Origin: Schizochytrium sp. TIO01
Taxonomy: Eukaryota; Protista; Bigyra: Labyrinthulomycetes
Direction: 5' to 3'
NCBI GenBank assembly: GCA_004764695.1
Contig: SMSO01000034.1
Coordinates: 2,418,001-2,482,000 of the forward strand
DNA: 64,000 bases
The position numbers and the translations under genes were made by a program. The notes beneath the pieces were generated by a model that made no database searches, was not told where the DNA came from, and was given only the letters and a program-made list of their open reading frames with translations. This document shows, in pieces, positions 29,510-54,589 of the stretch (its first letter is position 1; every line of letters starts with the position of its first letter).

Positions 29510-30563
29510 AGGTTATTGTCACAATTGTCTTTCCTTATTACGAGGAATACACTTAAACACCTTGTAGGTAGTATTTTATATTGAATTTTTTTTTCCCCCT
29601 AAAACCATAATGTTTATTCCTCAATCATAGAAGCGCAGAGACTTGCTTGATTAAAAATGGGTTTTGTTGATGTAGTTATTTCTTGTGGTTTGTTTGTAAA
29701 CGTTTTCTCTCGGGGCGAGTCAGAAAACGTTAGCTACAGTTTCACGTGTTCTTATCGGCGATGCACCCTGCTATGTCAGAGTGCACGGCCCTTGTAAAGG
29801 CCATTGGTTCCTATGACACTCTTACCTTTTCATCTAATAGAGCCTTTTATACTGTGAGAGTATGCAAACACTATCAGTTTCTTGAAACCCCATTCAGCTT
29901 TGCTTCAGCTGCTTTCGTTTCGTGTTGAAGCGGTGCAGTTTCACTGCCATGCACTCACATTGGGTTTGTAGAAGTCTGAATGGTAGCTCTAGGTCCCAAT
30001 AGCCGCGGTGAAAGTTATGGGCTGGTTTGGTCCCTTTCGATACCTCCTATAAAGATAAGTGCGTCTGAAGGTAAAACAAACTATAACTTGAAGACAATAC
30101 AAATTAATTAAAAGTAAAAGATGCAAAATAAAATGCTCGCTCGTTCAGTCTTGAGATGGGAAAGTACAATAAGAACCAGTAGACCGTGTATGAGCGCAAA
30201 TGTAGAGGTTCCTAGAAAGTCGAGTTTCATTCCAAACTACTAGCCGGGCTAGTCATGATTGATTCTTCACCTCACTTTACAGTTACACCTACTGTTATAC
30301 CCATGTGCTATGCGGGAGATCTTCTGTATTTGATAGGCAAGCGTACGAGGGTCGAAAAGGCGCAGCGCGTGAAAGGAAGAAATGTCTCGAGAAGCTGGCA
30401 GTTATGATTTGCAAATAAGCCTCTGATGAAGAAGTCCTCCTGAAGAGTATTCTGCATGAAAGCAAAACCCGAGCCTCGGTTCGAGGCGCGCAGGGCTTCA
30501 AGTCGTTGTGAAGGTTTGATTGCTATTTTATTGCATTACGCTGCGTTCCATTGCGATACTAAT

Positions 30564-33500
30564 ATGGAGATTACTCCAATAGGGGACGATGAGGATATTG
30601 AGCTTGTGCTGCGACTAGTGCGCAAAGTATCCAATCTGCTGCATAGTGCGAGAACCTGCAAGCACAAGGCTTCTCATCTTGAAATGCTTGTGGAGAAATT
30701 ATCTCGGAAACTTGAACAGCCCCAGGCCGGAAACATTGACACCCTAGTTCTTGAGGCGACGCTGCGCGAAATCATTGCCATTTTGCAACCTTACTTTATT
30801 GAGACGCGAGGGCCTGCCAGCGTCATCCTAACACTTTTGCATAGCCGTCAGGCTTATCAAGCTCTGCTTGATGCCGAAGACCGTATATTTACAATGCTCA
30901 AAGTCTGTCAGCTCAGCCTGGGTGATCTGCATCGAAGACCCGAGAAGGATATAGATCATCGAGATATTGAAGACGACCATAGCTTACTTACACAGCTTCT
31001 CGAACAACGTATCGAAAAGGGCTCCTACAGTGAACATGATTTACAGATCGTTATAGAGCTCTTAGAGAAGCAACACGGTGTTGATACCATTTCTGTTCTT
31101 GATAGATCGTATGGCACACGACGTGAATGTCAAGCTATGCAAGCGTTGTTTGCCTATTTACTTAAAGAGCAACGCTACGAAATTGCTACTCTTTCAAGAG
31201 AGAGTATACTCAAAATTGACACAAGCAATACTCTGGGCCACGGTCATTTTGGGCAAGTATTGCAAGGTGCTATCGTTGATGACTTGGGCATCAGGTTTAG
31301 TGTTGCTCTCAAACGTGTACGTCCATCAAGGGACTACCTCCCATTGCATGAGCAAAGATCACTTCTTCTTGAGGCAGAACTGTCGCGTGGCCTCAAACAT
31401 AAGAACCTTGTCAATTTTCACGGTAGTTCTGTTGTGGATGGGCATTTATATCTTGTCATGGACCTCTGTGACTTTTCTCTAGATGACTTACTATATGATG
31501 CTGGAGCTCGAGGGCCAACTAAGCTTTTGATCAAAGACAAAGAAGCAATACTACGAGGTATCGCTCGCGGATTATCTTACCTTCATAACAAAGGCATTAT
31601 TCATTGTGATCTAAAGCCGACTAACGTTTTGCTTAGAGCGGATCTTGGACTTGTTAAGTTATCGGGTTTTGGTCTCAACACATTTAACTCCAATGCAGCC
31701 TTAGTTGGCACACCTGCATACAAAGCACCTGAAGTGATTCAAGCCCCAGCACGCTGGACCAAGCAAGCTGATATATATTCTTTTGGAATGGTCATGTGGG
31801 AGATCTACCATGAACGGTGCCCCTTCTCATCTCTGCATACGGCGACCGATCTTGAAGCTCGTGTTCTGAACGGTGATCGGCCCATTCTTAACCTTCCCGA
31901 TGATAAGTCAGCCATAGATATAGTTGAAATGATCGAAGAATGCTGGGAACATAATCCTTGGGACCGACCACTTGCTTCTGAAGTTCTCAAGAAACTTGAG
32001 AACCGTCGCTTTCGAAACAGGAAACGAGGCTCAGTGAAAATAATTCAAGGCTTAATGGCGACAATGACCAAGAACAGAAGCCACAATGATCGAGAGTCTG
32101 CTCGTGTAGAAAGTATAGACATTGTACAATATCTATTGCAGGACCTTGTCGACGACACTGGTCTGTATGGCCGTTTACATACATTAAAGGCTCTGCATGC
32201 GGGCTTGAAACAAGAAAGAAATGCTCTAATATCTGACGACCTTCGTGCAGAGGTCAGGAGTCGGGGAGTTACCTTGCAAATAAGCAAATTATTACAAGAG
32301 TTCGACCAAGAACCAGAAGTATACTGTCATGCTTTGTGGGTTCTTTATTATGCTCTCACAGGCAGCAGTGATACAATTTCTTTTCGTGAAGCGGCAGTAC
32401 AAGACTACCACATTGTTGAGACTACGTTAGTGCTAATGCATGACCACTACGATAATGCGGATTTGTTAGCTGCTGCGTTAGGTGTTTTCCAGAACCTCTT
32501 GCATGCATCTGAGCGTAACACCGAAATATTGGGGCAAGGGCTTGACGTCGGATCTGTCATTGTCGATGCTATGCAAGATCATCCAGAGCACCAGGGTATT
32601 CAAGAGCACGGATGCGGTGCACTTTGGAAGCTAGCAACAAACGAGCGTAATCGAGAATTACTTGGACTAGAATTAGATGCAGGGTTTGTGGTCCTGGCTG
32701 CGATGCAAAATCATAGTTCTCAAGATTTACTCCAAGAAAATGCCTGCGGTGCGCTCTGGAACCTTGCAATAAACACAAAATATTGCAAAATTCTTTGCCA
32801 TAAGTACAATGTCACTGAGATAATTACTCAAGCTATGGACGTTCATAGATTCCAAGCCGGAGTGCAAGAACAAGCATGTGGCGCACTTTGGCACCTCGCA
32901 CGAAATGGTACTAACAACAAGAAGCTTTTGATAAAGGACCCCTCTATTGGACATGCTCTTGTGAAAGCAATGCAGACACACCAAAGCAACACTAATATTC
33001 AACGACTAGCTTGTACAGTCATCTGGAATCTAGCAGTCGATGAAACAAATTGTGAGCTTCTTGGTCAAGATCTTAATATTGGTGTGGAGATCATCGCTGC
33101 CATGCAAAAGCACCGATCAAATGCCCTCTTGCAACAACACGCCTGTATTGCACTACGTAATTTAGCTGTGAATCCGTATAACCAAGCATTACTTGGGCTA
33201 GAGCTTAAAGCTGGAGCAGCGATCATGTTTTCAATGCAAGCGCACTGGAGCAACGCGAAAGTGCAAGAGACTGCCTGTATGGCTCTGTGGAACCTTGCCT
33301 GGGATACACAAAATCAAGATTTATTTACGCAGCAGTTGAATATTGGAGAGACGCTTGTACTTACTATGCGTAAACACCCAGACAATGTTGGTGTGCTCGA
33401 AAACGCATGTTCTGCTTTACGAAATTTGGCTGCAAATATGCATCATAAAGAAAATATAGCTCAAGAGGTTTTGTCGGTTATGCAAAAACATCTAACATAT

Positions 33501-34601
33501 GCTGGCATTCAAGAACAAGGTTGCGCCGTGCTACGCAACCTTGCAGCTAAGGAAGAACTTGAGAAGGTGATAGGCGATATTGATGGTCTTGTAAAGATTA
33601 TAATCAGGACCCTGCAGACCCATCGATTCGACTCAGGCGTACAAGAGAATGCTTGTGCGGTCTTACGTAACATAGAAATGACGGTTAAAAATCAAGAGAT
33701 TCTTGGTCAAACTCTCAATGTTGGCCAAGAATTAGTTGTAACAATGCAAACACATCGTCAATGTGCTGCTGTGCAAGAGAATGCTTGTGCCGTGATACGT
33801 AATCTTGCGATGAATGCTCAGAACAAAGAAATCCTTTGTCAACAGCTTAGCGTGGGATACGAAATTATAATGGCCATGCAAATTCATCTTAAGGATGCTG
33901 GGGTACAAGAGCAGGCTTGTGCCGCTCTTCGCAACCTTGCTGTGAATGCTCGAAATCAAGAAATTCTAGGTGGCGAGCTCAATGTAGCTGACGAACTCAT
34001 AGAAGTCATGCAAGCGCATCGAGACTGTGCAGTTGTACAAGAGCATGCTTGCGCTACGATTCGGAACCTTTCTTGGAATGCGCGTAACAAGGAGATTATT
34101 GTGCAAGAATCGCAGACAGCCAGAGAGATTATCATTGCAATGCAACGCCATTGGAACAACGCAGAATTGCAACGATTGGCCTGCACTGCCCTTCGCAACC
34201 TTGCTGCAAATAGTGAAAATCAAAGGATTCTTGGTCAAGAGCTCAACGTTTGTGATGAAATTGTAGTAGCTATGCAGGCTCATCGTGACAACGCTGCCGT
34301 GCAGCGCCTCGCGTGCGGAGCTCTGAAAAGTTTAGCCAAGAATGCACGCAATTCTAAACTTCTTTGTCGCGAGCTCAACATTGGCAAGGTTCTTGCTACA
34401 GCTATGCACGCTCACCCATACAATGCAGAGGTGCAAGAAAATGCTTGCCGAACTTTGCGAAATTTGGCGCAGCACAGTAAGTCTAGAGATTCCCTGCGGA
34501 GGCAAGGTGTGTTAGATGAAATCAAGCGGGCCATGGATAGATTTCCTGCGCTTCGTTCCCCACCGGAAGCGCTCCAGAGATTGTCTTCCTTCTCAACCTA
34601 A
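30564..34601 (+). CDS. MLKL-like helical bundle / pseudokinase / ARM-repeat protein (16 clear repeats)
   Basis: Likely start MEITPIG at 30564 by alignment with the paralogs. Kinase motifs GHGHFG, VALK, HCDLKPTN, VKLSGFG (no DFG Asp) and YKAPE. Mostly 44-aa repeats with QExACxAL(W/R)NLA. Confidence 0.9.
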   Translation: MEITPIGDDEDIELVLRLVRKVSNLLHSARTCKHKASHLEMLVEKLSRKLEQPQAGNIDTLVLEATLREIIAILQPYFIETRGPASVILTLLHSRQAYQALLDAEDRIFTMLKVCQLSLGDLHRRPEKDIDHRDIEDDHSLLTQLLEQRIEKGSYSEHDLQIVIELLEKQHGVDTISVLDRSYGTRRECQAMQALFAYLLKEQRYEIATLSRESILKIDTSNTLGHGHFGQVLQGAIVDDLGIRFSVALKRVRPSRDYLPLHEQRSLLLEAELSRGLKHKNLVNFHGSSVVDGHLYLVMDLCDFSLDDLLYDAGARGPTKLLIKDKEAILRGIARGLSYLHNKGIIHCDLKPTNVLLRADLGLVKLSGFGLNTFNSNAALVGTPAYKAPEVIQAPARWTKQADIYSFGMVMWEIYHERCPFSSLHTATDLEARVLNGDRPILNLPDDKSAIDIVEMIEECWEHNPWDRPLASEVLKKLENRRFRNRKRGSVKIIQGLMATMTKNRSHNDRESARVESIDIVQYLLQDLVDDTGLYGRLHTLKALHAGLKQERNALISDDLRAEVRSRGVTLQISKLLQEFDQEPEVYCHALWVLYYALTGSSDTISFREAAVQDYHIVETTLVLMHDHYDNADLLAAALGVFQNLLHASERNTEILGQGLDVGSVIVDAMQDHPEHQGIQEHGCGALWKLATNERNRELLGLELDAGFVVLAAMQNHSSQDLLQENACGALWNLAINTKYCKILCHKYNVTEIITQAMDVHRFQAGVQEQACGALWHLARNGTNNKKLLIKDPSIGHALVKAMQTHQSNTNIQRLACTVIWNLAVDETNCELLGQDLNIGVEIIAAMQKHRSNALLQQHACIALRNLAVNPYNQALLGLELKAGAAIMFSMQAHWSNAKVQETACMALWNLAWDTQNQDLFTQQLNIGETLVLTMRKHPDNVGVLENACSALRNLAANMHHKENIAQEVLSVMQKHLTYAGIQEQGCAVLRNLAAKEELEKVIGDIDGLVKIIIRTLQTHRFDSGVQENACAVLRNIEMTVKNQEILGQTLNVGQELVVTMQTHRQCAAVQENACAVIRNLAMNAQNKEILCQQLSVGYEIIMAMQIHLKDAGVQEQACAALRNLAVNARNQEILGGELNVADELIEVMQAHRDCAVVQEHACATIRNLSWNARNKEIIVQESQTAREIIIAMQRHWNNAELQRLACTALRNLAANSENQRILGQELNVCDEIVVAMQAHRDNAAVQRLACGALKSLAKNARNSKLLCRELNIGKVLATAMHAHPYNAEVQENACRTLRNLAQHSKSRDSLRRQGVLDEIKRAMDRFPALRSPPEALQRLSSFST

Positions 34602-35378
34602 AATGAAAAGATTCGCCATTCATATACTAAAGAGCCTACTTTGTGCCACATCTTTCTTGCCTCTTCCAAGAGAACGGCAACTTTTTTCATCAGCCGTACA
34701 TGCGTGCAGATTCGAGTGGCCTGTACTCGAACCACAAGGACAAAGGTCTAGTCTTTAAAGGCCAGGCATGGTAGCGTCTGGCAGCCACTGATTTCGAGAC
34801 ATTGGCATGACAAAACAGCTGTCGCAGAACTTCTCACAGCATAGACAAAGAATCTTTTGACTCTATCCTTGCTGCAGTAGGCGTAGTAGTGATCGAAGGT
34901 TAAGCCTCGTACTTGTAGCATTCTGATGGTCATCACCCTCGCTAGATTAGGAACAAAAGAGGTCTCACGACCTTTCATTTGCTGATTGCTTTGGTGGTAC
35001 GTGCTACTTGCTGTCTGCCTCTGGGCCACTGGGCCTCCCCTTGTGGGTCTTGGCATTCGCATTCTAGATAGCGAGCCCATGCTCTCTTTACTGGCGATTT
35101 CGAGCCCCATTCACAATCATGACTAAAAATGACCATGACGATGATGGATCTTCACTGTGCAATTGTTTTGCGCTCTGCTGTGACTGTGACGTTGGCGAAC
35201 CATCCTCGAACGATGCCTCCGAAAGGGTGTCGTGAACCAAGATTCGTTCAATTGCCTTTAGGCGTTAATTGCCGAGCTGTCTCCACCACATGGAACAGCC
35301 AAGGACCTTCTAACTGCCCCCAATCATTCGCAACTTAGGCGAGAGTGAGGCTGTTACGAAGTAAAATGAAGGACTTCG

Positions 35379-35418
35379 TCGCAGCACGTATCGATCGCAG
35401 CACGTATCGATCGCAGCA
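35379..35418 (+). repeat. 16-bp tandem duplication (TCGCAGCACGTATCGA) x2.5
   Basis: Direct reading. Confidence 0.85.
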
Positions 35419-36981
35419 TTTAATAATCACAGCATGTCAAAATCATAGTGAGGAAATTCTGCGCATCTTGGAGAGCGGACCATCTCGGCATCAGGCGAGA
35501 GAGCAAGCTCGTTGATCACATCCTGCTCAGCGTCGAGTGCTTGGGATTGCTTTGCTTTTCTTTCAAATTGGTTGCGCAAATAATCATGAAAGACTGTTTC
35601 ATCGATTGCAGCCTGGCCATCATCGTGTACGAGATTGGCTTGGCCGAAATCGCATCTTCCGACGAAAGGCTGAGAAGAATGAAGCGGTTCTCAAAACCAA
35701 CAAGAGCACAGAATTTGCAGGCGTCGCATTTTGGCTTTTTGCGAATACCTTCAGGCCTCGCCTCCTGCTCTGCACGTTCCAGTGCCGGACCTCGCAGAAT
35801 CTGCGCGAGCCAGCTGGAAACCGCATTGAGTTCGACGGTCGGTCTTTATGATTCTATTCAAGGACTTCCATGATATAACAACTCCCTGTGATTTCATTTC
35901 TATTGAGCGAGTACCGCCCAAGCTACGACTACCGTGACGAAGCCAGATATTTCCATCGCTGGCTCATTCATTCACAGCTGCGCAATTGCCTCTCTGCAGC
36001 TGCACTTATGGAGAGAGAAAGGTGACCAATCACCCAGCTGATGGTAGGATTAAGGCAACAAGTCTTCCGCAGTCTTCGCAGCTGTGTCCCTCCAAGTTTT
36101 GGTTTAGTAAATTCAGACTCTGTGCTTAGTTAGGTAAACTTTAGCATTTGGGTCTTTCGCAGAGAGTTTTTCTGAAGCCTTGGCCCCTTCAAGCTCTATC
36201 GAATTTGATTTTCCAATTCGCCACAGCCATTTCGTTCAGTGGGTGCTAAATGAATGCTCCTGACACACATTTCCAGTTGAGCAACTACCTCGACATTGCA
36301 GTTGCTTCGATGTAATGTAAGACTTCGTCTACGAAGCCCAAAGATACAATTCAAGCCTCGTAATTTCAGATCCCAAGATGCTCCCAGCTCTAGGAGCTGC
36401 AAAGTCTCTCCGAAAGCTCGTTTGCGAGCTGCTCTGTAGCAAGATTCGGACTCAGGTGCATATAGGCTCGGGAGAATATAATTAGTACCGTTACTGTAAA
36501 TATTGCCTCTAGGAGTAAGTCAAGTTATTCCGAGATGGAAAAGAGATGTTAGAAGGTTCAGTTTCTGCACACGTGAAAGTTCTTCTTAACTAAACAAGGT
36601 AGTAGATGAGAGTACCCAGTATATACACTTTTGTTCAAGATGATGTAAGAACTAGCTAAGGTTCAAGAAGTCCCTAAGAGAGCTGATAATTGATAACTAA
36701 TAGTTGTTATGAGAAGAAGAAAGTCGAAGTTGGAATCACTTGTACACGAATTCGTCAAATACAACCTTGAGAGTTGAGACGCCCAAAAATTTTAGGGAAC
36801 TCATGAATGGAATAGATCATAAAACCTGAAAAGTGGGTAGAGAGAGAAAGAACCATGGATATCACGGCAGGGGTGAACGAAAAAAGACAAAAACTAAAAA
36901 GGTCTGCGAGATGGAGCAAAACCCAATCGCAGGGAATCTGCCAACAGCTGGGAAGATACCTAAGTTAAAAACTAAAGAAAG

Positions 36982-39369
36982 ATGGACCCTATATCAACGC
37001 TATCGATGGTCATTCAGCTTGGCCAAAAGGCATCAGAACTTCTCCAGGATGCTAAAACGTGCAGACACAAAGCAGCGCATCTAAAAACCTTGCTTGATGA
37101 ATTCACTTCTCGCGTAGACCAGTTAGAAGATGCTGATGTTGACGTGTCGGTGCTGGAGTCAAACATGCGCGAAATTTATACAATGCTTAAGCCATATTTT
37201 AAGCACAATCGAGGCGTTGCTTCAAACATTATTCGCTTGCTTAACTCAAGGCACACATACGAAGCTCTTTGTGATGCAGAGCAGCGTCTGCAAACAATCT
37301 TGCAAATCTGCGCTATCGACCTTGCCTTACAAAACCGAGCACGAAGCATCGCATCTAGTGTTGATGAAGAGCAGTCTGACACAGAGGAGGCAGATCTTCA
37401 AGAGGACCATGATCACCTTGTTGAAATGCTCGGGGAGCTTCGTGGACAAGGCCGCCTAGATGACAGTCAGATTGACGCTGTCCTGGACTTGAATGAACAC
37501 CAGCAACAAGAACGTCTAAGCATTACTGATGTAATTCAAGGCCGCGTAGGAACCGAGGAGCAAAGCGAAATTGTTAAGTTGCTGCTTAAGCACCACCTAC
37601 AAGAAGAGCATGACGGCATCGTAACTCTAGATAAAAACATGCTTACGTTCAACGACCCAGAAGAAATGCTTGGCCATGGTCGATTTGGCGAAGTTGTTGG
37701 GGGAGTCTTACGAGATGAAGATGGCAAGGAAACCCCAGTAGCAATTAAGCGCGTGCGTCCGTCAAGCGAAGATCAAGAACTCATCGAAGAGAGAGCTCTC
37801 ATTTTCGAAGCTGATGGCTGGCAGGAATTACAACATCCCAACATTGTTTGTCTTTTGGGAGCGTGCATCATTGAAGAAAAGATCCACTTAGTCATGGACC
37901 ATTGTGATCTTTCTTTGCGCGACCTTTTGCGTGAGAGTAGCACAGCTGGGCCGACACAGCTTTCTGATGAAGATAAAGAGACCATTGCGCGCAGCATCGT
38001 TCGCGGTCTAGACTACTTACATGGTCAAGGTGTGATTCATCGCGATTTGAAACCTGCGACTGTACTTCTAAGTGTTGATTTTGGACTGGTTAAGTTGTCT
38101 GGATTCGGCCTCTCAACACGTACAACTATCGGTACAACCGCCGCAGACACTCTCTCAGCTGAGGGAACCTCCCTTTACATGGCTCCAGAAGTGATGACCC
38201 CGCCAGCTCGGTGGACAACTCGTGCAGATATTTATTCTTTGGGCCTAATTTTATGGGAAATCTACAATGCTCAAACACCTTACATGCACGTGGGTTCTGT
38301 CACAGAGCTAGAATCTCGTGTTATGAGTGGTGAACGGCCTTCAATTTCAGAAGAGATTGTCACGTCCAAATGGTTAGTACAGATAATTCAGCAATGCTGG
38401 CAACATGACCCGAAGCAGCGCCCTCGCGCCTCTCGGATACTGAAACGTTTCCTTTCCCGAGGTAAATCCAGTCGGCGCTCCACCCGAATCATTCGAGGTT
38501 TAGTCGCGACCATTACTCGCAGTCGTTTCCAGAGTACTTCCTATGGAGAAGAAAATGAACATATCCAGCAAATGCAAGATCTTCTCCGAGATATTGCCGA
38601 AGCTGAGGATCTTAGTGATACAGGCGAGTCGTTGAAAGCTCTGCATGCTATCCTGCAAAAAGAATATGAGGTTAATCTCTCAGAAAGTGTGCGATCTGAA
38701 GCGTGTACACGAGGTGTTCTTACGCGTATGCGCAGAGTTCTCAGTGATGAGGACTTAGATCCCTCGATTCTTGCCGAGGCAATGTGGATTTTGACCTATG
38801 CGCTTTCCGGAAGAGGAAATGCGATTCTCTTTCGCGAGGCTGCTGTTCGAGACTATCACTTTGGTGAGAGCATTCTTGAAATTCTACGAGGAGATATTGA
38901 AAATGTCGACTTGCAAACCGCAGGGTGCGCTATTTTGATGACCTTGGCTCATTCTCCTGCTCGTAATCAGCAAGTCCTAGGCATAGAACTCAATGCCTGC
39001 CAAGATTTGTATGAGATAATGCAAGCACATCCAAGTAATGCTGATGTTCAGCAGTGGGCATGTGGTGCTTTGTGGAATCTGGCAATGAATTCTTCAAATC
39101 GAGAATTCATGGCTCTTGATCTGAATGTCGGCCAGGTAATTCTCGAAGCGATGCAGTTTCACGAAAAGAATTTAGAGGTTCTTGAGAACGCATGCTGGGC
39201 TTTATACAATCTCGCGCAAGAAGACAGTGTCAAAGAGATTCTCTGCCAACAAGGAGCCGTTGCTGAAGTGCAGATTGCGCATCGAAGATACCCTACGCTT
39301 CGAGCTGCAGATCAGGCTCTTGAAAGGCTTGTTGAAAACCAAATCGAGGTCGTGGAAGGAGAAGTTTGA
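36982..39369 (+). CDS. MLKL-like helical bundle / pseudokinase / ARM-repeat protein (3 clear repeats)
   Basis: N-terminus MDPISTLSMVIQLGQKASELLQDAKTCRHKAAHL. Kinase motifs GHGRFG, VAIK, HRDLKPAT (Asn lost), VKLSGFG (Asp lost) and YMAPE. ARM repeats follow. Confidence 0.92.
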   Translation: MDPISTLSMVIQLGQKASELLQDAKTCRHKAAHLKTLLDEFTSRVDQLEDADVDVSVLESNMREIYTMLKPYFKHNRGVASNIIRLLNSRHTYEALCDAEQRLQTILQICAIDLALQNRARSIASSVDEEQSDTEEADLQEDHDHLVEMLGELRGQGRLDDSQIDAVLDLNEHQQQERLSITDVIQGRVGTEEQSEIVKLLLKHHLQEEHDGIVTLDKNMLTFNDPEEMLGHGRFGEVVGGVLRDEDGKETPVAIKRVRPSSEDQELIEERALIFEADGWQELQHPNIVCLLGACIIEEKIHLVMDHCDLSLRDLLRESSTAGPTQLSDEDKETIARSIVRGLDYLHGQGVIHRDLKPATVLLSVDFGLVKLSGFGLSTRTTIGTTAADTLSAEGTSLYMAPEVMTPPARWTTRADIYSLGLILWEIYNAQTPYMHVGSVTELESRVMSGERPSISEEIVTSKWLVQIIQQCWQHDPKQRPRASRILKRFLSRGKSSRRSTRIIRGLVATITRSRFQSTSYGEENEHIQQMQDLLRDIAEAEDLSDTGESLKALHAILQKEYEVNLSESVRSEACTRGVLTRMRRVLSDEDLDPSILAEAMWILTYALSGRGNAILFREAAVRDYHFGESILEILRGDIENVDLQTAGCAILMTLAHSPARNQQVLGIELNACQDLYEIMQAHPSNADVQQWACGALWNLAMNSSNREFMALDLNVGQVILEAMQFHEKNLEVLENACWALYNLAQEDSVKEILCQQGAVAEVQIAHRRYPTLRAADQALERLVENQIEVVEGEV

Positions 39370-42148: not shown

Positions 42149-42766
<618 letters not shown>

Positions 42767-45026: not shown

Positions 45027-46435
45027 TACCTACCTGCTACAGGTCGCGAAGACGAAACCTGACATGAAAGAAAAGGAATGGCAGGAAAAGCCAACCCACG
45101 TAAGCGTAAGCGGTGCTGCTCGCTTCGAGTATATTTGTGGGCCCTCAGGCACAATTCGCCGCCGCGAGCAGGTCGTGCGCTGCGAGGAGCCCTCGTGTGG
45201 CTCCTGGAGACGCCAAGCCACTCGCTGCCCTCGCCGCGAAAGAGCCTTTTTTCAAGCCAACATGGGCTTGGATTGGAATTTCTCCAACCTCAAGTGAACT
45301 ACAAAATTGTGCCATGGGCCCATGACGACGATGCCATTCCGCCGGGCGGCGTGACCAAAACACGGCTGTTCGGTCTCCTTTGGCAGCTCCAGCGGCAGAG
45401 CCTCCAAGTCCGTCTCGAGGCATCGCTGCTAGTGCTAGAAAGCAGCTGTGATGGCCGCTTCGAGAGCGTCTCCTTAGGATCCCTTCTTCCTGAGGCCTTT
45501 CCTCCGAGTGTTGGACCAGGAACTCGCGCATTCGTGAGTTCGCTTCCCTCGCTCGCGCCAAAACTCAGGCCGGCAAGCGTCTGGGCGTCGAGCATGAAGT
45601 AGCCCGACACCGGCAGCACGTTGAGCGAGGCCGGTGTCGATCGATCCCTGTCCGCAAAGAAGCCCGAGTTCGAGTTTGGCTTTGCCGCTTCGTCGCCTTC
45701 GAAGACGGACGAATTTGAAATTTGAAATTTGAAATTCTCTGGAAATTTGAAATTTCAAATTTGTTGAACTTAAAAAATAAAAAATAAAAACAGAGACGAT
45801 AGATTTCTTTTCGTCGAAAAAGAAAATGACCTTCAACATTCAAACGAGGATCTTCGAGGAGGCCCACTTCAAGTTCAGGCAACTTCGAACCTTGGCAGAC
45901 CTACGGAAAGACCTCCGGAGAACTCCGGGCGTGGGCTGAGGTTCCCGAGGATCGCACCCGCCGGTCTGCCAGATGCGGCGGTGGTCTCTCTCTCTCCGCC
46001 AGCGAGGCCCGTGCCCAGGTGCGAAGCAGGAATGAGAAAGCGCTGCCAGCTCGCAGCTGTAAAATCGGTCGATCACCATTTCTAAATTACAAAACAGATT
46101 CTGTTCAAAGTTTTGCAGTTAAAATCTTTTTTCTTTTTCTTTTTCTTTTTCTTTTTCTTTTTCTTTTTTAAAATCGAATTAAAAACCTCCAAAGAAAGAA
46201 GAAAACGTCGGAGATACTTGAGAAAAGCTTTTCTCTCCTTCTTTCTCGAGGGAAAAAGAGCGCATAATACAACGAGTAAACAATGAGGGAACAAAGAGAG
46301 CGAGCGAGCTAAGGTCTGAGCGTGGGAGGCGCGGGCTCTCCCACGCGCACGCCAGAGGCAGCCGGCAGCTCGAGTAAAACGCCAGGCTGTTGAGCCGGCG
46401 CAGCGATTTAAAACTCTGGGGTACATACCTACCTG
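45027..46435. other. GC-rich island with decayed coding-like sequence, bounded by a TACCTACCTG direct repeat; possible mobile-element relic
   Basis: Visibly more GC-rich than its flanks. Identical 10-mers at 45027-45036 and 46426-46435. Internal (GAAATTT)n and (TTTTTC)n tracts. Confidence 0.35.
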
Positions 46436-49181
46436 AGGCTTCTTTCTCTTCGTGTCTGTGGGTTAAGCTCTTGCGATCGTTGGTCTCGCCTCTTGGCCGG
46501 AATTGATGATCTTCGCTCTTTCATTCCATTTACTCATTTCGAGCTTAGATCTGAGGCTCATTGACCTCGTAAATAGTTGCTAGGAAGTCGTTCGAAGTGA
46601 GCCAACGGAATGGATCACTTCGCAGATGTCCCTAGCTCGCAAAGTTTGCCACGATCCTGTTTTCCTTCCTGCCGCCAGCAAGGCTACGGCTACGTCCTCT
46701 TATCCTTCTTTAAGTTGATAGCATCTATCATGTGGGCTTGGAAGAGGTTACCTTGTCTCGGCAGTACCTAGGTACTTTTCGAACCAGCGATTCACGACGA
46801 GATAAAGGTATTCAAGATTAAGATTGTTGATCATCCGACTCGAGTGATATTCTCTTTGAGGCAAACTCACTGCATTTTACTTGTTTCCCTCTGTTTGGCT
46901 GTTGTACGAGATGCATGCATGTTACGGTGTTATTAGTGCTGTTGCCCCTGCTGACAAGTCCTCATGTGCCTACCTATCAGTTTTGTTGCCGTTAGCGTCA
47001 CGATCTGAAGCAGCAGTACGGTACTTTTTCCTGAACCAGAATAACATGACAGAGACGGTGACTGTAACTTGACGGCTACAATGGATGGTGCCAAGGGCAC
47101 TGTAACGATCTGACAATCTCCAAGGGCTAGCTTCGCTAGGATCTTAATCCTCGGTAATCTTTGCCAAGGACACTTCTAAATTCGCAAGTTTCACATTTAA
47201 ATCTCTACCTTCGCCAGCGACAAACACCAATGGCGAGGTAGAAAACGGTCCCAAGAGCCTGAACAGATCTATTCAGTGTACCACGGCCCAAGCAAATACA
47301 TGCTCACGGCCCACTCACACGGCCGGCATCCTCATATCTTCAGAATTCCTCATAGGTCTTTACTTGTGTAATTCTGGGCAATCGCAAGCTATTTGTCCTT
47401 GCAAACTTTAAGTTTCTGTGCATCCACCTGATGCAAGATTCTACTTTCAACGCTCATTTGTTCAAGAGGATCTTGGCCCGCCCCAGGGACTTGAACTACA
47501 TTCTTACCCGCCCACCAGTCGTTGCGTTGCCCTGCTCTCGAGTCATGACATTTCACGAGGCAAGCGTTGTTTTGCTGAGAACGCACTTACATGAATCTGG
47601 ACCTGGGACCTTTTGGCGGCTGCACTTGCGATGGGAGATGCAGATTTTCGAGCGAAAGCTGGAGCGGCTCGGATCATTTCCGCGAGAGCCACCGCTATCT
47701 TGAGCTTCTGCATGCCAATTTCTAACTCTGCCTCGATATTCCAGAGCTATGCAGGGCTGGAAAGCGGCACTTGAAGCAGCTTCGCAGGGTGCGGCGGTCA
47801 GGACTTGCATCCGCCAAGGGTGGCGAGGAGCCAAACGATGTGTACCGTCCATTACTCTGTTGAGGCGACGGTTTATCTTCGAGTTCTCCTCATTATTTGA
47901 TTTTCAACATTGTTATTATCATTATTTTGTATTTGAACTAACTAACTAAATAAATAAATAAACAGATAAACAAGTACAAGCGCCGCACGTGCACGCTTCA
48001 TAGTGTCTGGTATTATTATATATAATGATTATCTTAATTTTAATCTTAATTTTGGTTCTATTTTTTAATTTTAAGAAAAAAGGGAAAAAAAGAGAGAGAG
48101 AGAGAGAGAGAGACTTACATTTTTGTGGGTTGTGTACTATCTGCGTTAAAACAAAAGTAAAAGTTTTAAAAGGAATATCCTTGCATCTTCTCCTTCTTTA
48201 TGTGCTAAATTAGTTACACTGACAGACTTTGAAGAGAGCCCGAGGTAATAACCAAACGTAGTCCGGTAAGCTTGGGCTGGCTCGATTTACGAGTGTTGCT
48301 AAACAAGCGGAATCTAACACAACAACAGCAGATAATTGTGTTGCAGCAGGCACTTTAAAAAAAGGTGAAAGAAGAGGGCGAACGGGAGAATAAAAAATAA
48401 AAAAGTAAAAAAAATGATGCCATATACATTTTCATAGGCATTCCGTTTTGATATTTTAAGCCAAAACAATTGTAGCACAACAGACTTGCGCAGTATGTTT
48501 GCATCTTCGAATATGGCAAATATACCATCGGAGCCCAGATTCTGACGTTCTTTCAAGCCTGGTGTGCTAACGTGTTATTACGTGCGGGCTCTACTCCAAT
48601 GGTCGTGTCGGCATTTCCTTCGCATCTGAGACAAAACGAAAACTATCTCTAGAGGTTACTATGAGGAAGGAAAGGGTTAACATTTTCAATCTTAATTTTT
48701 TGTCAAGAATAACTAACAATGAAAACTTGCAGCAGAAGAGGGCTTATCTAACGACGAATCAGGGCTCCAAGCTCTTTCGATTCCAAGTCAAGTTGGCTGC
48801 GAACCAGCAATGTCATCGCCGGCTAAGATCAAATGCAAACTCGAAAGTCTTTTGCATCACCGGAGTTACCGGAGCTTCGCACGCCAATCACTCCGAGCCT
48901 GCCCCACAACCGCCATGATTCAGAACCGAAGCTGCCTCAATGCTAATCTCATAAATCTCCTTTAGTTAGGTTGTAGTACACAATGCAAAATGTATAATGC
49001 AGAGCATTATACCACCTTACTCGCCGCTGGGAAGCAGGTCAGCCTGAAGAGAGGACATACTGGCGACTGAGACTGGCCAGAGGGCACTCGCTGCTGGCTG
49101 ATTTATCTGCCTCTGCCGAGCCTGCCGGCGTTTCGGGCGAGCCATTGGGGTCATCGACTGGACGCGAGGAGCGAAGAGATG

Positions 49182-49222
<41 letters not shown>
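49182..49222 (+). repeat. (TGCT)n microsatellite
   Basis: Direct reading, about 10 copies. Confidence 0.95.
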
Positions 49223-49223
<1 letters not shown>

Positions 49224-49868
49224 TCCTGTGCTGCTTCTTGCCTAACGTTTTATTTGCGAGTGCCAATCAAATCTTGGTTCACAAAAAATAATATAAAAAA
49301 TAAAAAATACAGCCAGGCTGAAGCCGGAGGAAGTGGCTTATGCTCAAACGAGCACTCGGCTGTCACTCTCTAGAGCCCGATATCCTGTATTGCAGAGGCT
49401 TAGATCCCTCCAAGCTTCAAGCTTTGCAGGCTTGCGGAAGCGACATATATTTTTCGTTATTTTTTATTGTTACGTATTTTAGCCTTTAATTGAAAGAAAC
49501 TAATCGTCTTCAATTTATAATTTAATTGATTAAAAGAAAAAGAAAAAGAAAAAGTGAAAAAGAAAAAGTAGAGAGGTAAAGCCGGAGCCCCCGAAGAGCA
49601 TGAGCTTGTGCTTGAGCTTGAGCTAGGCCGCCTCCATAAACTATGACGAACTAATCACCGGTGTGTCGAACCCTCTGGAGTGCCTGACCTCCTCTCTCCT
49701 GGTTTATTCGTTTATCTGCTTACTCGTTCGTTCATAGGTTTTCCCCATCATCCACGTGGCTCTTGGTGACTGCCTTGGCACACTCCCTCGCATGCGAAGA
49801 GTGTTGAGTCGTTGTGTACCATCAAGACTTCGATTCAACTTCCAGTCCCAGTAGTAGCTCTGACTTAG

Positions 49869-49912
49869 GCACGCACGTGAACAAGTCATTGCACGCACGT
49901 GAATAAGTCATT
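49869..49912 (+). repeat. 22-bp tandem duplication, each copy containing CACGTG
   Basis: gcacgcacgtgaacaagtcatt gcacgcacgtgaataagtcatt. Confidence 0.85.
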
Positions 49913-49969
49913 TGTAAATAGATCGCGATCGTAAATCGTCGTCACCGGTACTCTGGCTGCCTTATAAGA

Positions 49970-50100
49970 GCGATCAAATTGCAAATTGAGGGCTGCCAAG
50001 TTCATGCAGACTTGGTAGAGACTTTGGGCACGCGGCGGCGGAGTTTGGTCAATCGGGCGCTTGAGCGATTTTGCTCGAGGCGAAGAATTTTGCTTTGCTT
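49970..50100 (-). pseudogene. Possible frameshifted bZIP fragment
   Basis: KILRLEQNRSSARLTKLRRR (N-x7-K basic region) in one frame, followed by AQSLYQVCMNLAALNLQF (heptad L/L/F) in another frame. Confidence 0.35.
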
Positions 50101-51454
50101 GACGCTCTCGTTTCGTTTGACGATCAGAGATTTGGTATTCGCAACCAGGAAGCAAATCGTTGTTTGCATCGCTGGAATCAAGCGCGATTCTCCGTCAAGC
50201 GCGATGCGAGGAGGGCGTAGGGTATGTGGGCAGGCAGGCAGGCAGCGTGCGGCTTCAATCGAGCTTCGAGCTCAAGTTGGCGGGAGACATCCATCGAACC
50301 AGCGCGCCCGCGAGGTTGAGATTGAATGGTCAACTTCGTAAGTATGTTTGCGAGAGTCGATTTTCATTTGCTGTCTGAATGGGAGAGGTGTGCACCGTCG
50401 CATTTCTTTCGCGCAGCAAACATTTTTTGTTTTGGAATTTTTTGTTTTTGTATTTCTTGCTTTTCTAATTCTCTTATTGTTTTAGAATATGATCATACGT
50501 TTGTACTTTAACATTATTGTTTCACTTTTTTGTTTTTTATATTCACATGTATTTATATGTGTGCCATTGTCTTTCTTCAAAGCCTTCTTCCATAGAGTAG
50601 AAGACGGGTCGGATAATCGTTGAGAATTCAGATCTCGCCAGATGCGCGCAAGAGAAGTTTTGCCGACACTGGCAAGTCTACTCACAGCCACATATCTGTG
50701 CACGTGCCAATCAGTTGAGAAAGCAAAACTATGAAGCGAAGGTTTCGAAAGCTGAAAAGAACTCGGGAAAATATTTTGCAAAGAAAATACTTACCAACAG
50801 CACTTAAGAATAGGAAAAAGAAAAGAAAAAGCCGCAGCTCAACAATAGTGCTTTTAGCTATTCTGTAAAAAATGAAAATAAGATAAAATAAATAACAAGA
50901 TTAAGCTCGCTTCTCCCGGGGCCTCAGCTAAAAGCGAGTTGGTCCACATAACTACATTGATGCTACAGCCAGCGCTCGGGCTGAATATTCCAGCAATCGC
51001 GCGAGACATGGCCTTGCTCAAGTCGAAACAAACGGAAAAACTCACACTCAGTGATAACGCTCGAGCACGCAGAACTGGCGATTCGGAAGTGACAATCAAT
51101 CGATCTCTTTTTTTACCTTTTTAATTTTATTTTACTTTACTTTTTATTTACTTATAATATATCAGCCAATAGTGGGCTCCTCTGGCACGCGCTCGACGGA
51201 GCACTTTTATTAATACATTATAGCCCAAACAATAGCACTCACATGCGCCCACGCACACCAAAGTTTCGGAAAGTCTCGACGAGCTCTAGCAAATCCAGAA
51301 CTCGGAAACATTCTCATCACAATTTAGCAGGGCCTAGAAGTCCTCGTGCGTTTTGCGAAGTATCGGGTTGTCATATAAAGCTTTGAGTTGTGAAAGCGGA
51401 GTCAGTACTATTTACTTGGAGCAAGGGCGAACATAGGTGTCAGGGTGCACCACA

Positions 51455-54400
51455 ATGGACCCTCGAAAAGGGGCTGGGTTCGTGCAAGAGCTTGTATGCG
51501 AGGCCTCGAAATTGCTCAAAGGAGCAACCACATGTCATCGACGAGCAGCACATCTTGATGAAGTGCTTGCCATCCTGGCGGAGGAGCTCACGAAGCTAAA
51601 TGAGGACAACCGTGGCGTGGATATATCACTTGTTGAATCAGGTGTACGTGAGTTTGTGACAGAAATCCGGCCACATGTTGGAGAGCAACAAGGTGAAGTC
51701 TCACAAATCATTCGTCTTATGAACACGAGGCAAACGAGGTTTGCGCTCTCAGATGCTGAAAAACGCATCCGCAACACAATGAACATTTGTCAGATCGAGC
51801 CTACCTTGGCGCTAAGTCTCGACGATGCGGATGACATCGATCTAAGCGATGCTAGTGATGACTCCGCACAGCTTCTATCTATTCTCGAAGGTTTGCAGGA
51901 AGAAAATAAGATTGGAGAAGAATATTTGACAATCATCATCGACCTTTGCCGGGAAGATACGATGGTAGACTTTGATGCGATGCTTGATGGTCTTGCTGGA
52001 TCTCGCAGACAGCGACAGGCAGTAGAAAAACTTGCAACCTACCTGCTGCTGAGGCAAGAATCCGAAATCGCGTCTTTGTCTCCAGAGAGTGTGACTGTCA
52101 ATGAACCGATCGAAGTTCTTGGCCAAGGCCATTTTGGTCAGGTTCTTGCTGGTGTTCTGCAAGGCCCGAACGGTCGCAAAATTGATGTAGCAATCAAACA
52201 CATTCTTCCGTCTCGCGATCGACTTCAGCTCAAGGAGCAAAAGGCACTCATCACTGAAGCAGAACATTGGCGCGGCTTACAGCACCCGAACATTGTGTGC
52301 TTGCTGGGAACTTGTATTTTGCACAAGCGTCTTCAACTTATTATGGATAGATGTGACCTTTCTCTTGACGAGTTACTTTATGATACTGATGTGGCAAACT
52401 CTAATCCCCTGACTATGGAAGGCAAAGAAACCATTCTACGGGGAATGGCTCGAGGTCTCGATTACTTGCACAGCCAAGGCATTATTCACCGTGACTTGAA
52501 GCCTGCAAATGTCATGCTTAGCAAAGACCTTGGGCTTGTTAAGCTCACAGATTTTGGTTTAGCCACACACACACTCCCCAACATGAGCATTGCAGAAAAT
52601 ACCATCACCGTCGGCACTCCTGTATACATGGCCCCGGAAATTATTCACCCACCAGCTCGCTGGACAACTCGTGCAGATATTTACTCCTACGGCTTGATTA
52701 TGTGGGAAATCTATCACGGAGAATCTCCTTTCGGACGAATGACGTCCACCTCTGACCTTGAACAAAGAGTATTAAATGGTGACCGGCCTGTCATTTCAGA
52801 TGAACTCAATCTTCCAGCATGGGTCAAACAAACCATTAAACAATGCTGGCAGCATGTACCCGAAGACCGCCCTCACGCCGTGGACATTTTGAAAAAGTTA
52901 GAGTCTAATGGTGTTCGTTCTCGGCGCTCCACAAAAATTATTCGCGGAATTGTTTCTACCTTGGCTCGCACCAGAAGCCGCGGAAGTACCACTTTAGATT
53001 CAAAGGCGGGTATTGTACAAGAGGTACAAGGCCTTCTGCGCGACTTAACGGAAGGTGACGTTTCCGACGATCTTCTCCCAACACTCAGGGGTATCCAGCA
53101 AGCTTTGGAGAAAGAGCGGATGGCTGGGAATGGCAGCGAAGAACTCCGCACAGAAGTACGAAGCCGCGGTATTCTAATTCAAGTCCGCGGCATTCTCGAA
53201 AATGAATCCCACGAAGTTGAAACCTATACACAGGCTTTGCTTGTACTTCGTGATGCGTTGACTGGTACCAATGCACTTCCATTCCGCGAGGCAGCTGTGC
53301 AATCATACCACATGGGTGAAGCGGTTATCAACCTAATGCAACGATTTCGTGAGGATGGTGACCTTCAAGCAGCAGCATGCAGTGTCCTTGCATATCTTGC
53401 CTTTTCGCTAGAAGAAAACATGGAGATCCTTGGTCATCGCTTGAAGGTTGGTAATGATATTGTAGCTGCTATGGATAACCATCGCGAGAACCAGGATGTA
53501 CAAGAAGCAGCTTTGGAGGCCGTATACTATCTTTCTGTGAATGAAGAAAACCGTCAACGTCTTGTACATGAGTTAACCATCGGCGAGAAAATAATGACTG
53601 CAATGAAGACACACCCGGATAATGCAAGCCTTCAAGAATATGCATGCGGAGCAATTGCAAATCTTGCTGTTGACGAACAAAATCGCGAGATTCTTGTTCG
53701 TGTGCGCCATGCAGGAGAAGAAATTATAAAGGCCATGGAGACCCACATTGACCATGCCGGAGTTCAGGAAAAAGCATGTGGTGCAATTTGGAATATGGCA
53801 TACAACGAAAGCAACTGTGACTTTCTTGGTCAGAACCTCCATATTGGCGTTGAAATACTTGCCTCTATGCAGGCTCATCGAACCAATCCTGGTGTACAGC
53901 GAATGGCATGTGGCGCGATTGCTACCTTGTGTGACAATGAGCGAAATCAAATTACCTTTGGCCAGGAGCTGCACGCCGGAAATGAAATACAGGCAGCTAT
54001 GAGGGAGCATGTCAATAACCCCGCAATTCAGGAGCAAGCATGCAGGGCTATCTGGAAACTGGCTTGCAATGAGCGTAATCGTGAGATTTTGGGTCAACAG
54101 CTGAACATTGGCGCTGAGATCGTTGCAGCTATGCGAACACAACGCAGCAGTGTTTCTGTTCAAGAAAAGGCATGCGGTGCGATATGGCAGCTTGCCGAAA
54201 ATGAACATAATCAGGGAACTCTTGGGCAGCAGCTCAAGGTTGGAACTGAAATTGTTGCAGCTATGAAAAGACATCGTGCCAGCGCAGAAGTTCAAAAGGC
54301 TGCATGCAGTGCTCTTGCAAGCCTTGCAGCAAATGACCGAAACAAAGAAATTCTTGGTCAAGAGTTAAACGCAGGCAAGGAAATTATTGCAGCGATGCAA

Positions 54401-54589
54401 GCACATCGTGCAAACGCTGCTGTACAGGAGGAAGCTTGCAGTGCACTCACAAATCTTGCTCTGAACGGATCGGTAAAGACACTTCTACGACGCCAAAGTG
54501 CTGCTCAAGAAGTCAAGCTTGCCCACGAGCGATTTCCCTCGCTTGAGCCAGCGAAAAGAGCCCACTCAAAACTCAAGTCCTTTTTCTGA
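51455..54589 (+). CDS. MLKL-like helical bundle / predicted active TKL-like kinase / ARM-repeat protein (9 clear repeats)
   Basis: The track start at 51437 is GTG; the first ATG is at 51455 (MDPRKG). Motifs GQGHFG, VAIK, HRDLKPAN, DFG and YMAPE are all intact. 44-aa ARM repeats. Confidence 0.92.
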   Translation: MDPRKGAGFVQELVCEASKLLKGATTCHRRAAHLDEVLAILAEELTKLNEDNRGVDISLVESGVREFVTEIRPHVGEQQGEVSQIIRLMNTRQTRFALSDAEKRIRNTMNICQIEPTLALSLDDADDIDLSDASDDSAQLLSILEGLQEENKIGEEYLTIIIDLCREDTMVDFDAMLDGLAGSRRQRQAVEKLATYLLLRQESEIASLSPESVTVNEPIEVLGQGHFGQVLAGVLQGPNGRKIDVAIKHILPSRDRLQLKEQKALITEAEHWRGLQHPNIVCLLGTCILHKRLQLIMDRCDLSLDELLYDTDVANSNPLTMEGKETILRGMARGLDYLHSQGIIHRDLKPANVMLSKDLGLVKLTDFGLATHTLPNMSIAENTITVGTPVYMAPEIIHPPARWTTRADIYSYGLIMWEIYHGESPFGRMTSTSDLEQRVLNGDRPVISDELNLPAWVKQTIKQCWQHVPEDRPHAVDILKKLESNGVRSRRSTKIIRGIVSTLARTRSRGSTTLDSKAGIVQEVQGLLRDLTEGDVSDDLLPTLRGIQQALEKERMAGNGSEELRTEVRSRGILIQVRGILENESHEVETYTQALLVLRDALTGTNALPFREAAVQSYHMGEAVINLMQRFREDGDLQAAACSVLAYLAFSLEENMEILGHRLKVGNDIVAAMDNHRENQDVQEAALEAVYYLSVNEENRQRLVHELTIGEKIMTAMKTHPDNASLQEYACGAIANLAVDEQNREILVRVRHAGEEIIKAMETHIDHAGVQEKACGAIWNMAYNESNCDFLGQNLHIGVEILASMQAHRTNPGVQRMACGAIATLCDNERNQITFGQELHAGNEIQAAMREHVNNPAIQEQACRAIWKLACNERNREILGQQLNIGAEIVAAMRTQRSSVSVQEKACGAIWQLAENEHNQGTLGQQLKVGTEIVAAMKRHRASAEVQKAACSALASLAANDRNKEILGQELNAGKEIIAAMQAHRANAAVQEEACSALTNLALNGSVKTLLRRQSAAQEVKLAHERFPSLEPAKRAHSKLKSFF

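Follow-up and report, generated by a model that had tools for sequence, protein, structure and literature searches.

Candidate MLKL-like bundle-kinase-ARM proteins encoded by a clustered gene family of the thraustochytrid Schizochytrium sp. TIO01

The window analysed here is the whole stretch of 64,000 nucleotides from contig SMSO01000034.1 of Schizochytrium sp. TIO01 (positions 2,418,001 to 2,482,000), and the subject of this work is a group of three genes within it, named W1, W2 and W3. A preliminary description, made from the letters alone, had placed three intronless paralogs of the same strand at 30564, 36982 and 51455, and had assigned to each of them an N-domain, a helical linker, a kinase fold and ARM repeats. 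The open reading frames (ORFs) were found intact at these places and the paralogy was confirmed, with pairwise identities of 39-42% over 760-1115 aligned columns (E = 0). In each of the three proteins a helical N-region of ~215 amino acids (aa) is followed by a tyrosine-kinase-like (TKL) type kinase domain, and Pfam detects Pkinase/PK_Tyr_Ser-Thr at about residues 220-490 and ARM_LRRK2/Arm at the C-terminus of all of them; residues 1-215 gave no Pfam family above threshold. The two motifs described as conserved, TC..[KR]A.HL and AL.DAE.R, are seen in W1, W2 and W3, and the Cys of the first is invariant in 12 paralogues. No extra fragments of the family were found within the window. The plan of these proteins is best read as an MLKL_N/HeLo-type bundle followed by brace helices, then a RIPK-like TKL kinase and a C-terminal ARM solenoid. 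The ARM units were counted with a hidden Markov model (HMM) of the 44-residue unit, which gave 16 in W1, 3 in W2 and 9 in W3. The features of the three genes are the following:

30564-34601, + strand: W1, 1345 aa, with bundle, brace, degenerate kinase and 16 ARM repeats (ORF, translation, Pfam, HMM count); an alternative upstream ATG at 30456 would give 1381 aa.
30564-30917, + strand: W1 N-terminal four-helix-bundle-like domain, residues 1-118 (paralogue alignments; the family profile matches the MLKL N-domain).
30918-31223, + strand: W1 helical brace/linker with the acidic D..EDH motif (alignment; helices predicted on the paralogue W2).
31224-31997, + strand: W1 kinase domain, predicted pseudokinase (Pfam, motif alignment).
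31602-31628, + strand: W1 HCD catalytic loop; SGFG stands in place of DFG, with its Gly at 31665-31667 (motif alignment).
32406-34502, + strand: W1 ARM array, 16 x 44 aa (Pfam ARM_LRRK2/Arm, stacked units, HMM count).
36982-39369, + strand: W2, 795 aa, with bundle, brace, degenerate kinase and 3 ARM repeats (ORF, Pfam).
36982-37320, + strand: W2 four-helix-bundle-like domain, residues 1-113 (AlphaFold2 model, Pfam MLKL_N, Foldseek, VIA).
37321-37659, + strand: W2 brace/linker helices, residues 114-226 (alignment, AlphaFold2 model); D138 and L146 are invariant and D142 is conserved at >=90% in the paralogue alignment.
37660-38448, + strand: W2 kinase domain, predicted pseudokinase (Pfam, motif alignment).
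38038-38064, + strand: W2 HRDLKPAT, the catalytic-loop Asn being replaced by Thr; SGFG stands for DFG, with its Gly at 38101-38103.
38866-39252, + strand: W2 short ARM array, 3 units (Pfam, stacked units, HMM count).
51455-54589, + strand: W3, 1044 aa, with bundle, brace, canonical kinase and 9 ARM repeats (ORF, Pfam); the ORF list gives 51437 as an alternative start.
51455-51799, + strand: W3 four-helix-bundle-like domain, residues 1-115 (alignment).
51800-52108, + strand: W3 brace/linker (alignment).
52109-52900, + strand: W3 kinase domain, catalytic motifs complete (Pfam, motif alignment).
52487-52513, + strand: W3 HRDLKPAN; also present are GxGxFG, VAIK, the DFG Asp at 52550-52552 and APE.
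53303-54493, + strand: W3 ARM array, 9 x 44 aa (Pfam, stacked units, HMM count).

The comparison of the N-terminal domain with MLKL was carried out by profile, by Pfam family, by predicted fold and by protein language model. A profile built on the N-region alignment of the 12 paralogues (A1) was searched with HMMER against 177,635 PDB sequences, and the five best matches were all the human MLKL N-domain (E 0.0065-0.014). Positions 7-140 of this profile align to residues 5-151 of human MLKL, including the acidic brace motif, which matches brace helix 1 of MLKL, and the brace segment of W2 falls on the human brace segment 'DADEDRRAF'. It had been proposed that the W2 N-terminus aligns with human MLKL free of gaps. 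The register of that alignment was recovered independently by HMMER, which places the first segment quoted there on human residues ~8-32 and SNIIRLLNS on SNICRFLTA, while over the whole domain a few small gaps appear. Among Pfam families, MLKL_N (PF22215) was the top one for the W2 N-region (E 0.011, residues 9-143, profile positions 3-141/142), and the N-region of a paralogue from elsewhere in the genome, L018, touches it weakly when scanned alone (E 0.076). In all, 3 of the 12 paralogues match it weakly.

The AlphaFold2 model of W2 residues 1-226 (predicted local distance difference test score 81, predicted template modelling score 0.78) shows a topology of four long helices, a short one lying between the third and the fourth (3-20, 28-47, 55-73, short 79-87, and 89-109), followed by brace helices predicted at 114-155, 161-177 and 192-212. 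When this model was submitted to Foldseek, a check that the preliminary description had recommended, the best natural matches were chains of the MLKL executioner domain, with probabilities of 0.60-0.98 (0.98 for 6zvo_A) and a target-normalised TM of ~0.5; all other natural proteins stayed at or below a probability of ~0.4. In a VIA-align structural search of 48,161 chains, the human MLKL N-domain (6ux8_A; Z 8.8, root-mean-square deviation (rmsd) 3.1, 135/152 residues) and mouse MLKL (4btf_A; Z 8.8) ranked first among natural bundle domains, and next came NRG1.1 CC-R, Rx CC, AtMLKL3 and HET-S HeLo domains, in the Z range 7.2-8.1. The protein-language-model neighbours of W2 (0.89) and of L018 (0.94), which are mutually only 27% identical, were the MLKL_N/MCAfunc/RPW8 clusters. 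The likeness to MLKL, on sequences and a predicted model, thus appears weak in any one test and consistent across the four, and we consider it highly probable that the N-domain is a true MLKL_N/HeLo-type bundle.

Several observations weigh against this kinship, and part of them would suit a different explanation, that the N-region is a helical or coiled-coil regulatory domain without kinship to MLKL, which it would resemble by convergence or by chance, given its helical composition and acidic stretch. The E-values are all marginal (0.0065, 0.011); the best MLKL_N score of W2 is 15.7 bits for a Pfam gathering cut-off of 27, and no MLKL match reaches the curated threshold. Scanned singly, the N-regions of W1 and W3 give no Pfam MLKL_N match, and phmmer with the W2 N-region alone found nothing in the PDB. 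A profile restricted to the bundle (A4) leaves the MLKL chains at E 0.57-1.3 (~0.6 at best), with unrelated proteins ranked higher, from which approximately 5 of the 19 bits of the MLKL match can be attributed to the acidic brace motif. De novo helical designs score as high as MLKL or above it in Foldseek and VIA, and by the calibration of the latter tool a Z below ~13 lies within the noise for helical bundles, which includes the 8.8 obtained here. Both searches by structure, when given a 500-residue model that joins the bundle to the kinase, returned only generic kinase domains, a result that does not bear on the inter-domain arrangement. The PF22215 search of the organism's own genome was without match, and it is uninformative, since the controls of the tool were silent too. 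Word-indexed protein searches gave the self match only for W2 residues 1-215, and nothing at E<=10 for alignment A1. We nevertheless judge the unrelated-domain explanation improbable, considering that four methods of different basis put one family first among natural proteins, over the full length and in one register; that the topology includes both the brace and the additional short helix ahead of the fourth one; that the bundle is placed as in MLKL, ~200 residues ahead of a TKL (pseudo)kinase; and that the match was repeated with a paralogue only 27% identical.

The extent of the family was examined in the 64-Mb genome of the organism, where the W2 N-domain found 17 loci, the profile of the 12 N-regions 27 matches, and the W3 kinase 19 kinases at 40-58% identity. 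One cluster holds five family genes within 65 kb (C30:179-245 kb), another holds three (C30:742-754 kb), and W1-W3 form a further one; the remaining loci are on C24, C30, C31 and C34. All 12 full-length members that were cut out (795-3024 aa) have one and the same architecture, and five split loci carry the kinase downstream as well. The number of ARM repeats goes from 3 to ~51. The latter are found in L024 (C24:4429600-4439500), a protein of 3024 aa that has the longest branch of the tree described below and a strongly degenerate kinase (HSD, NFG, VAIK not matched by the pattern).

Some copies depart from this pattern. L015 and L016 (C30:178530-179977 and C30:183828-185275), 5.3 kb apart, score identically in every search, which points to a very recent tandem duplication, and both have a frame break or an intron between the halves of the bundle. 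A single in-frame TAA/TAG, or a start only at the linker (L027, L028), was observed in several copies (C30:748078-748899, 752820-753641, 742143-742271, 5215973-5216104); copies of this kind are likely pseudogenes, truncated copies or intron-bearing genes.

The preliminary description had also suggested looking for the architecture across eukaryotes. When the N-region profile was searched with HMMER against 1.84 billion representative proteins, 12 proteins were obtained at E<=0.001, namely the organism's own paralogues and proteins of another thraustochytrid, Hondaea fermentalgiana, annotated as 'Protein kinase, putative'; in this search the family was found in no other organism. At least 8 Hondaea proteins match the N-region profile, and W3 has a full-length homologue in Hondaea (P0014) with 41% identity and 100% coverage. 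From these searches the family is seen as thraustochytrid-restricted and tandemly clustered, with ~20 genes in this genome. It was also possible to recognise sister kinases (L031-L034), the closest in the genome after the family itself, with 36-41% identity to the W3 kinase and a helical N-region of 217-258 aa, whose C-termini carry arrays of SAM domains (C7:527300-557300, C13:6581300-6587000) or a WD40 propeller (C4:1349500-1353500). Their N-regions align with those of the ARM family by hhalign (probability 57%, E 1e-4, 205 columns) and give no Pfam MLKL_N match.

With respect to the kinase domain, the motif alignment showed that W3, L018, L021 and two Hondaea proteins have a complete set, with DFG, HRDLKPAN and the αC Glu as well as GxGxFG and VAIK. 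W1 has HCD and SGFG, W2 has HRDLKPAT and SGFG, and seven further paralogues are degenerate by motifs, with the variants HGD, HSD or HSN together with NFG or GFG. Given the loss of the DFG Asp, W1 and W2 are predicted to be pseudokinases; W3 is predicted to be an active kinase. A 'pseudokinase switch' is therefore not a description of all three proteins, since W3 retains every catalytic motif. A tree was built on the first 560 residues of the window genes, the genome paralogues and the Hondaea sequences. W1, W2 and W3 branch deeply and without resolution amid the Hondaea sequences, and a genome-specific clade with support 96/95 mixes canonical and degenerate members, from which we conclude that the catalytic decay has been repeated and recent.

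As to the affinity of this kinase, the profile of the 12 paralogues had RIPK1 as its best single-domain kinase in the PDB (7.5e-45, 156 bits, ~30% identity), with FGFR3 at 141 bits. In the structure search of the model the FGFR1 chains came on top; RIPK1 took fourth place with Z 28.7, no more than 1.5 Z below them, and the MLKL pseudokinase was 17th (Z 26.8), amid many TK and TKL kinases. The kinase of the family is accordingly TKL-like with RIPK1 nearest, by a modest margin. An alignment to which two full-length Hondaea proteins were added (A3) gave a profile of 1262 positions dominated by kinase and ARM and uninformative for the N-domain; it links to the LRRK2 ARM (domain E 3e-17) and to RIPK1.

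The best Pfam match of the ARM array is PF23744 ARM_LRRK2. Selection was estimated as the ratio of nonsynonymous to synonymous substitution rates (dN/dS) on two close paralogues, L018 and L020, both outside the window, with the following values:

L018 vs L020, bundle: dN/dS 0.16.
L018 vs L020, brace: dN/dS 0.13.
L018 vs L020, kinase: dN/dS 0.13.
L018 vs L020, ARM array: dN/dS 1.12.

In the bundle and kinase of close paralogues dN/dS was 0.07-0.22, which shows these domains to be under purifying selection. The dS between L018 and L020 was 0.6-0.9 in bundle, brace and kinase and 0.11 in the ARM array, and this low value suggests a recent homogenisation of the array. Over 12 aligned ARM units there were 89 amino-acid differences, and 27 of the 44 register positions never differed. 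The differences concentrate at register positions 30 and 34 (12/12 units each), 39, 20, 24 and 27, and the same positions were the most variable in two further paralogue pairs (three pairs in total). Lying 3-4 residues apart, these positions are consistent with a single face of the third helix of the ARM unit. In W1 and W3 the entropy from repeat to repeat is likewise high at positions 24, 27, 30 and 34. The hypervariable set has a dN/dS of ~2, a value that counts for less because the pair that gave it had also served in part to define the set. Such a pattern would be expected for a binding groove under diversifying selection.

Opposite the ARM arrays of many members there are long stop-free antisense ORFs (53573-54361, - strand, in the window; L018:703-2506, L020:898-2840, L027, L029 and L030), of up to 634 aa and beginning 'MAATISAPTFKS...' or 'MLVLARLHWFD...'. 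They are probably a by-product of the codon composition of the ARM repeats and not genes.

Public data contain the W2 locus in 20 runs belonging to 12 studies. Two of the runs, guessed to be RNA, each give a single contig without joints over this gene, one of 2642 nt (36881-39523) and the other of 2508 nt (36933-39431); besides the ORF, these contigs take in ~50-100 nt on its upstream side and 60-150 nt on its downstream side. The RNA-guessed runs have no coverage at 39600-40399, and in a DNA run there is coverage across all 6 kb. Considering that the contigs bracket the W2 ORF without joints and that the DNA run covers everything, W2 is apparently transcribed as an unspliced mRNA; a point against it is that the RNA status of the runs is the guess of the tool. 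These data bear on whether W1-W3 might be pseudogenes in decay, or artefacts of annotation in a region rich in repeats, as the in-frame stops or frame breaks of some members elsewhere and the antisense ORFs opposite the ARM arrays could suggest. We regard this as extremely improbable. W1-W3 are uninterrupted across 795-1345 codons and colinear with their paralogues, and the pseudogene reading was rejected on the transcript-like contig that fits W2 exactly, the full-length homologue 41% identical in another genus, and the constraint on the bundle and kinase of the paralogues (dN/dS 0.07-0.22).

With these elements we favour, with moderate confidence, the interpretation that W1-W3 are autoinhibited proteins, receptor and executioner in one chain, with MLKL-like architecture. 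The proposed mechanism is modelled on MLKL and on immune receptors that bear repeats, and it is by analogy with them that autoinhibition, the sensing of a ligand, phosphorylation in trans, damage to membranes, the killing of cells and a role in immunity are inferred. In the resting state the kinase/ARM part would keep the bundle inactive. The binding of a ligand to the hypervariable ARM groove, the phosphorylation of the activation loop by a competent paralogue, or both, would release the bundle; the released protein would oligomerise through the brace, and the bundle would enter the membrane, with an ion leak or cell death that may limit a virus or other non-self agent. Of the sensor, switch and executioner parts proposed initially, the in silico results agree with the MLKL_N/HeLo-type bundle with its brace, with the (pseudo)kinase after it and with the hypervariable ARM face in close paralogues, while the pseudokinase is not found in all members. 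In contrast to MLKL, W3 and some of the paralogues have canonical kinases, and this counts against the interpretation, as does the fact that the selection signal comes from paralogues outside the window, W1-W3 being without a close partner. The proteins do not imply 'necroptosis' in its strict meaning: W1-W3 have no Pfam match to a RIPK3-type RHIM or to a death domain, the partner proteins not having been searched for.

The same genes could encode non-lethal signalling or scaffold kinases, in which the ARM array would recruit partners, the kinase would signal or scaffold, and the bundle would oligomerise or target the membrane or cytoskeleton without permeabilising. The ARM array is best matched by ARM_LRRK2 (LRRK2 ARM domain E 3e-17), every catalytic motif is kept in W3, L018 and L021, and the selection on bundle and kinase is of the ordinary purifying kind, all of which would suit such a function; moreover, the immune functions of plant MLKL are reportedly separable from cell death. 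Set against this are the nearest relatives of the bundle by profile, fold and language model, every one of them a death or immune module that acts on membranes (MLKL_N, RPW8/CC-R, HeLo), and the tandem expansion, repeated catalytic decay and hypervariable repeat face, which are more typical of immune receptors. We therefore consider the signalling or scaffold role possible and rather unlikely.

Vertebrate MLKL, which executes necroptosis, consists of a four-helix bundle, a brace of two helices and a pseudokinase. In the proposed receptor and executioner the modules follow one another as in MLKL, the kinase fold beginning ~200-220 residues in, and its bundle aligns by profile and predicted fold, including the short helix at human SNICRFL and the acidic brace motif. 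The DFG Asp is missing in W1 and W2 too; MLKL carries a GFE motif. The thraustochytrid family differs in the long C-terminal ARM array, in that several members, W3 among them, keep an apparently active kinase, in a kinase for which RIPK1 is a closer solved structure than MLKL, in an identity of 9-19%, below the Pfam threshold, and in having ~20 genes instead of a single one. The plant MLKLs (AtMLKL1-3), with a HeLo-like bundle, a brace and a pseudokinase, are another case of MLKL architecture outside animals with an extra C-terminal region. AtMLKL3 (6ka4) aligns over 196 residues with Z 7.4 and an rmsd of 8.4, which is a loose overall fit, and plant MLKL_N/RPW8 clusters are the feature neighbours by language model; the plant extension, on the other hand, is not an ARM solenoid, and the plant family is small and conserved.

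With the fungal HeLo/HELL proteins the bundle superfamily is in common (HET-S N-domain, Z 7.2), and the ARM repeats, highly similar in tandem and with few hypervariable positions, resemble those of fungal NLRs, whose HeLo-bearing forms have hypervariable ANK, TPR or WD40 repeats. Unlike them, W1-W3 show no amyloid motif, their sensor repeat is joined directly to the kinase, and the lineage is stramenopile. In fungi, fusions of HELL domains to kinase or pseudokinase domains are reported (PMC12881547).

LRRK2 and the ROCO proteins also join an LRRK2-type ARM array and a TKL kinase in a single chain, with the domain order reversed, the ARM array being C-terminal here, and LRRK2 is without an N-terminal four-helix bundle. 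Pfam found no ROC-COR, ANK, LRR or WD40 in W1-W3, and no Roc or COR in 9 paralogues either; since ROC and COR are absent and only the ARM_LRRK2-type repeats are common, membership in LRRK2/ROCO was rejected. Membership in NLR/STAND was likewise discarded, there being no NACHT/NB-ARC Pfam match in W1-W3 and the 9 paralogues and a kinase in the centre instead. RIPK1 is the best single-domain PDB match of the family kinase profile, with a margin over FGFR and TAK1 of only ~15 bits, and membership in RIPK was rejected because W1-W3 are without a Pfam match to RHIM, death domain or CARD.

Some observations concern the surroundings of the three genes. The spacer between W1 and W2 has no ORF >141 aa and no Pfam match, and it is mostly covered by RNA-guessed contigs (34437-36397), one of which reaches from the 3′ part of W1 to 35246. 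This signal could be a long 3′ untranslated region of W1, a non-coding RNA or a spliced gene. The RNA-guessed contigs have deletions of 3 and 6 nt with respect to the window at 34883 and 35140. The interval of 12 kb between W2 and W3 (39370-51436) has no ORF >175 aa and may hold spliced genes or non-coding DNA. The ORFs tested in the 2.4-kb and 12-kb spacers gave no Pfam family. Within the larger one, 42150-42765 is a (TTTA)154 microsatellite, 98% perfect, which explains the dip of guanine-cytosine content to 0.26 and a spurious 223-aa ORF with TTG start at 42132-42803, ruled out as a gene. Away from the group, a 1779-aa ORF on the - strand at 5555-10894, unrelated to the family, has AMP-binding, DIP2-like AMP and PP-binding domains, by which it is predicted to be an enzyme of the fatty-acyl-AMP-ligase/carrier-protein type.

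MLKL-type executioners have been described in animals, plants and fungi; the core of bundle, brace and (pseudo)kinase is already known in animals and plants, and HELL-kinase fusions are mentioned for fungi. The new elements are the occurrence in a stramenopile, the joining of the core directly to long ARM arrays that diversify (or to SAM or WD40), the tandem expansion to ~20 genes, and the coexistence of live and dead kinases. In 2020 a survey covering 67 protists found no MLKL homologues, and necroptosis regulators were taken as vertebrate-only (PMC7539657); in the literature searched there was no paper connecting MLKL with thraustochytrids. A stramenopile family of this kind, if true, would push the origin or spread of the cell-death module much wider across eukaryotes, and would represent a new coupling of the module to recognition, by direct fusion to diversifying repeats in place of RIPK3 or an NLR.

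As a doubtful and more general conjecture, thraustochytrids may run an NLR-independent innate immunity made of one-chain receptors, with an MLKL-type membrane-damaging head and a RIPK-like kinase or pseudokinase switch joined directly to interchangeable diversifying sensor repeats, in which live paralogues (W3) would activate dead ones (W1, W2). ARM repeats would be the sensor here, and SAM arrays or WD40 propellers in the sister subfamilies; if true, this would amount to a self-contained 'necrosome' from a tandem gene cluster. Thraustochytrids are grown in culture by industry, and large DNA viruses are reported to use them as hosts. The presence of live and dead kinases within one young clade is a natural experiment in pseudokinase evolution, and the family, if its proposed nature is true, would offer a tractable unicellular system for the pseudokinase gating of a membrane-damaging bundle.

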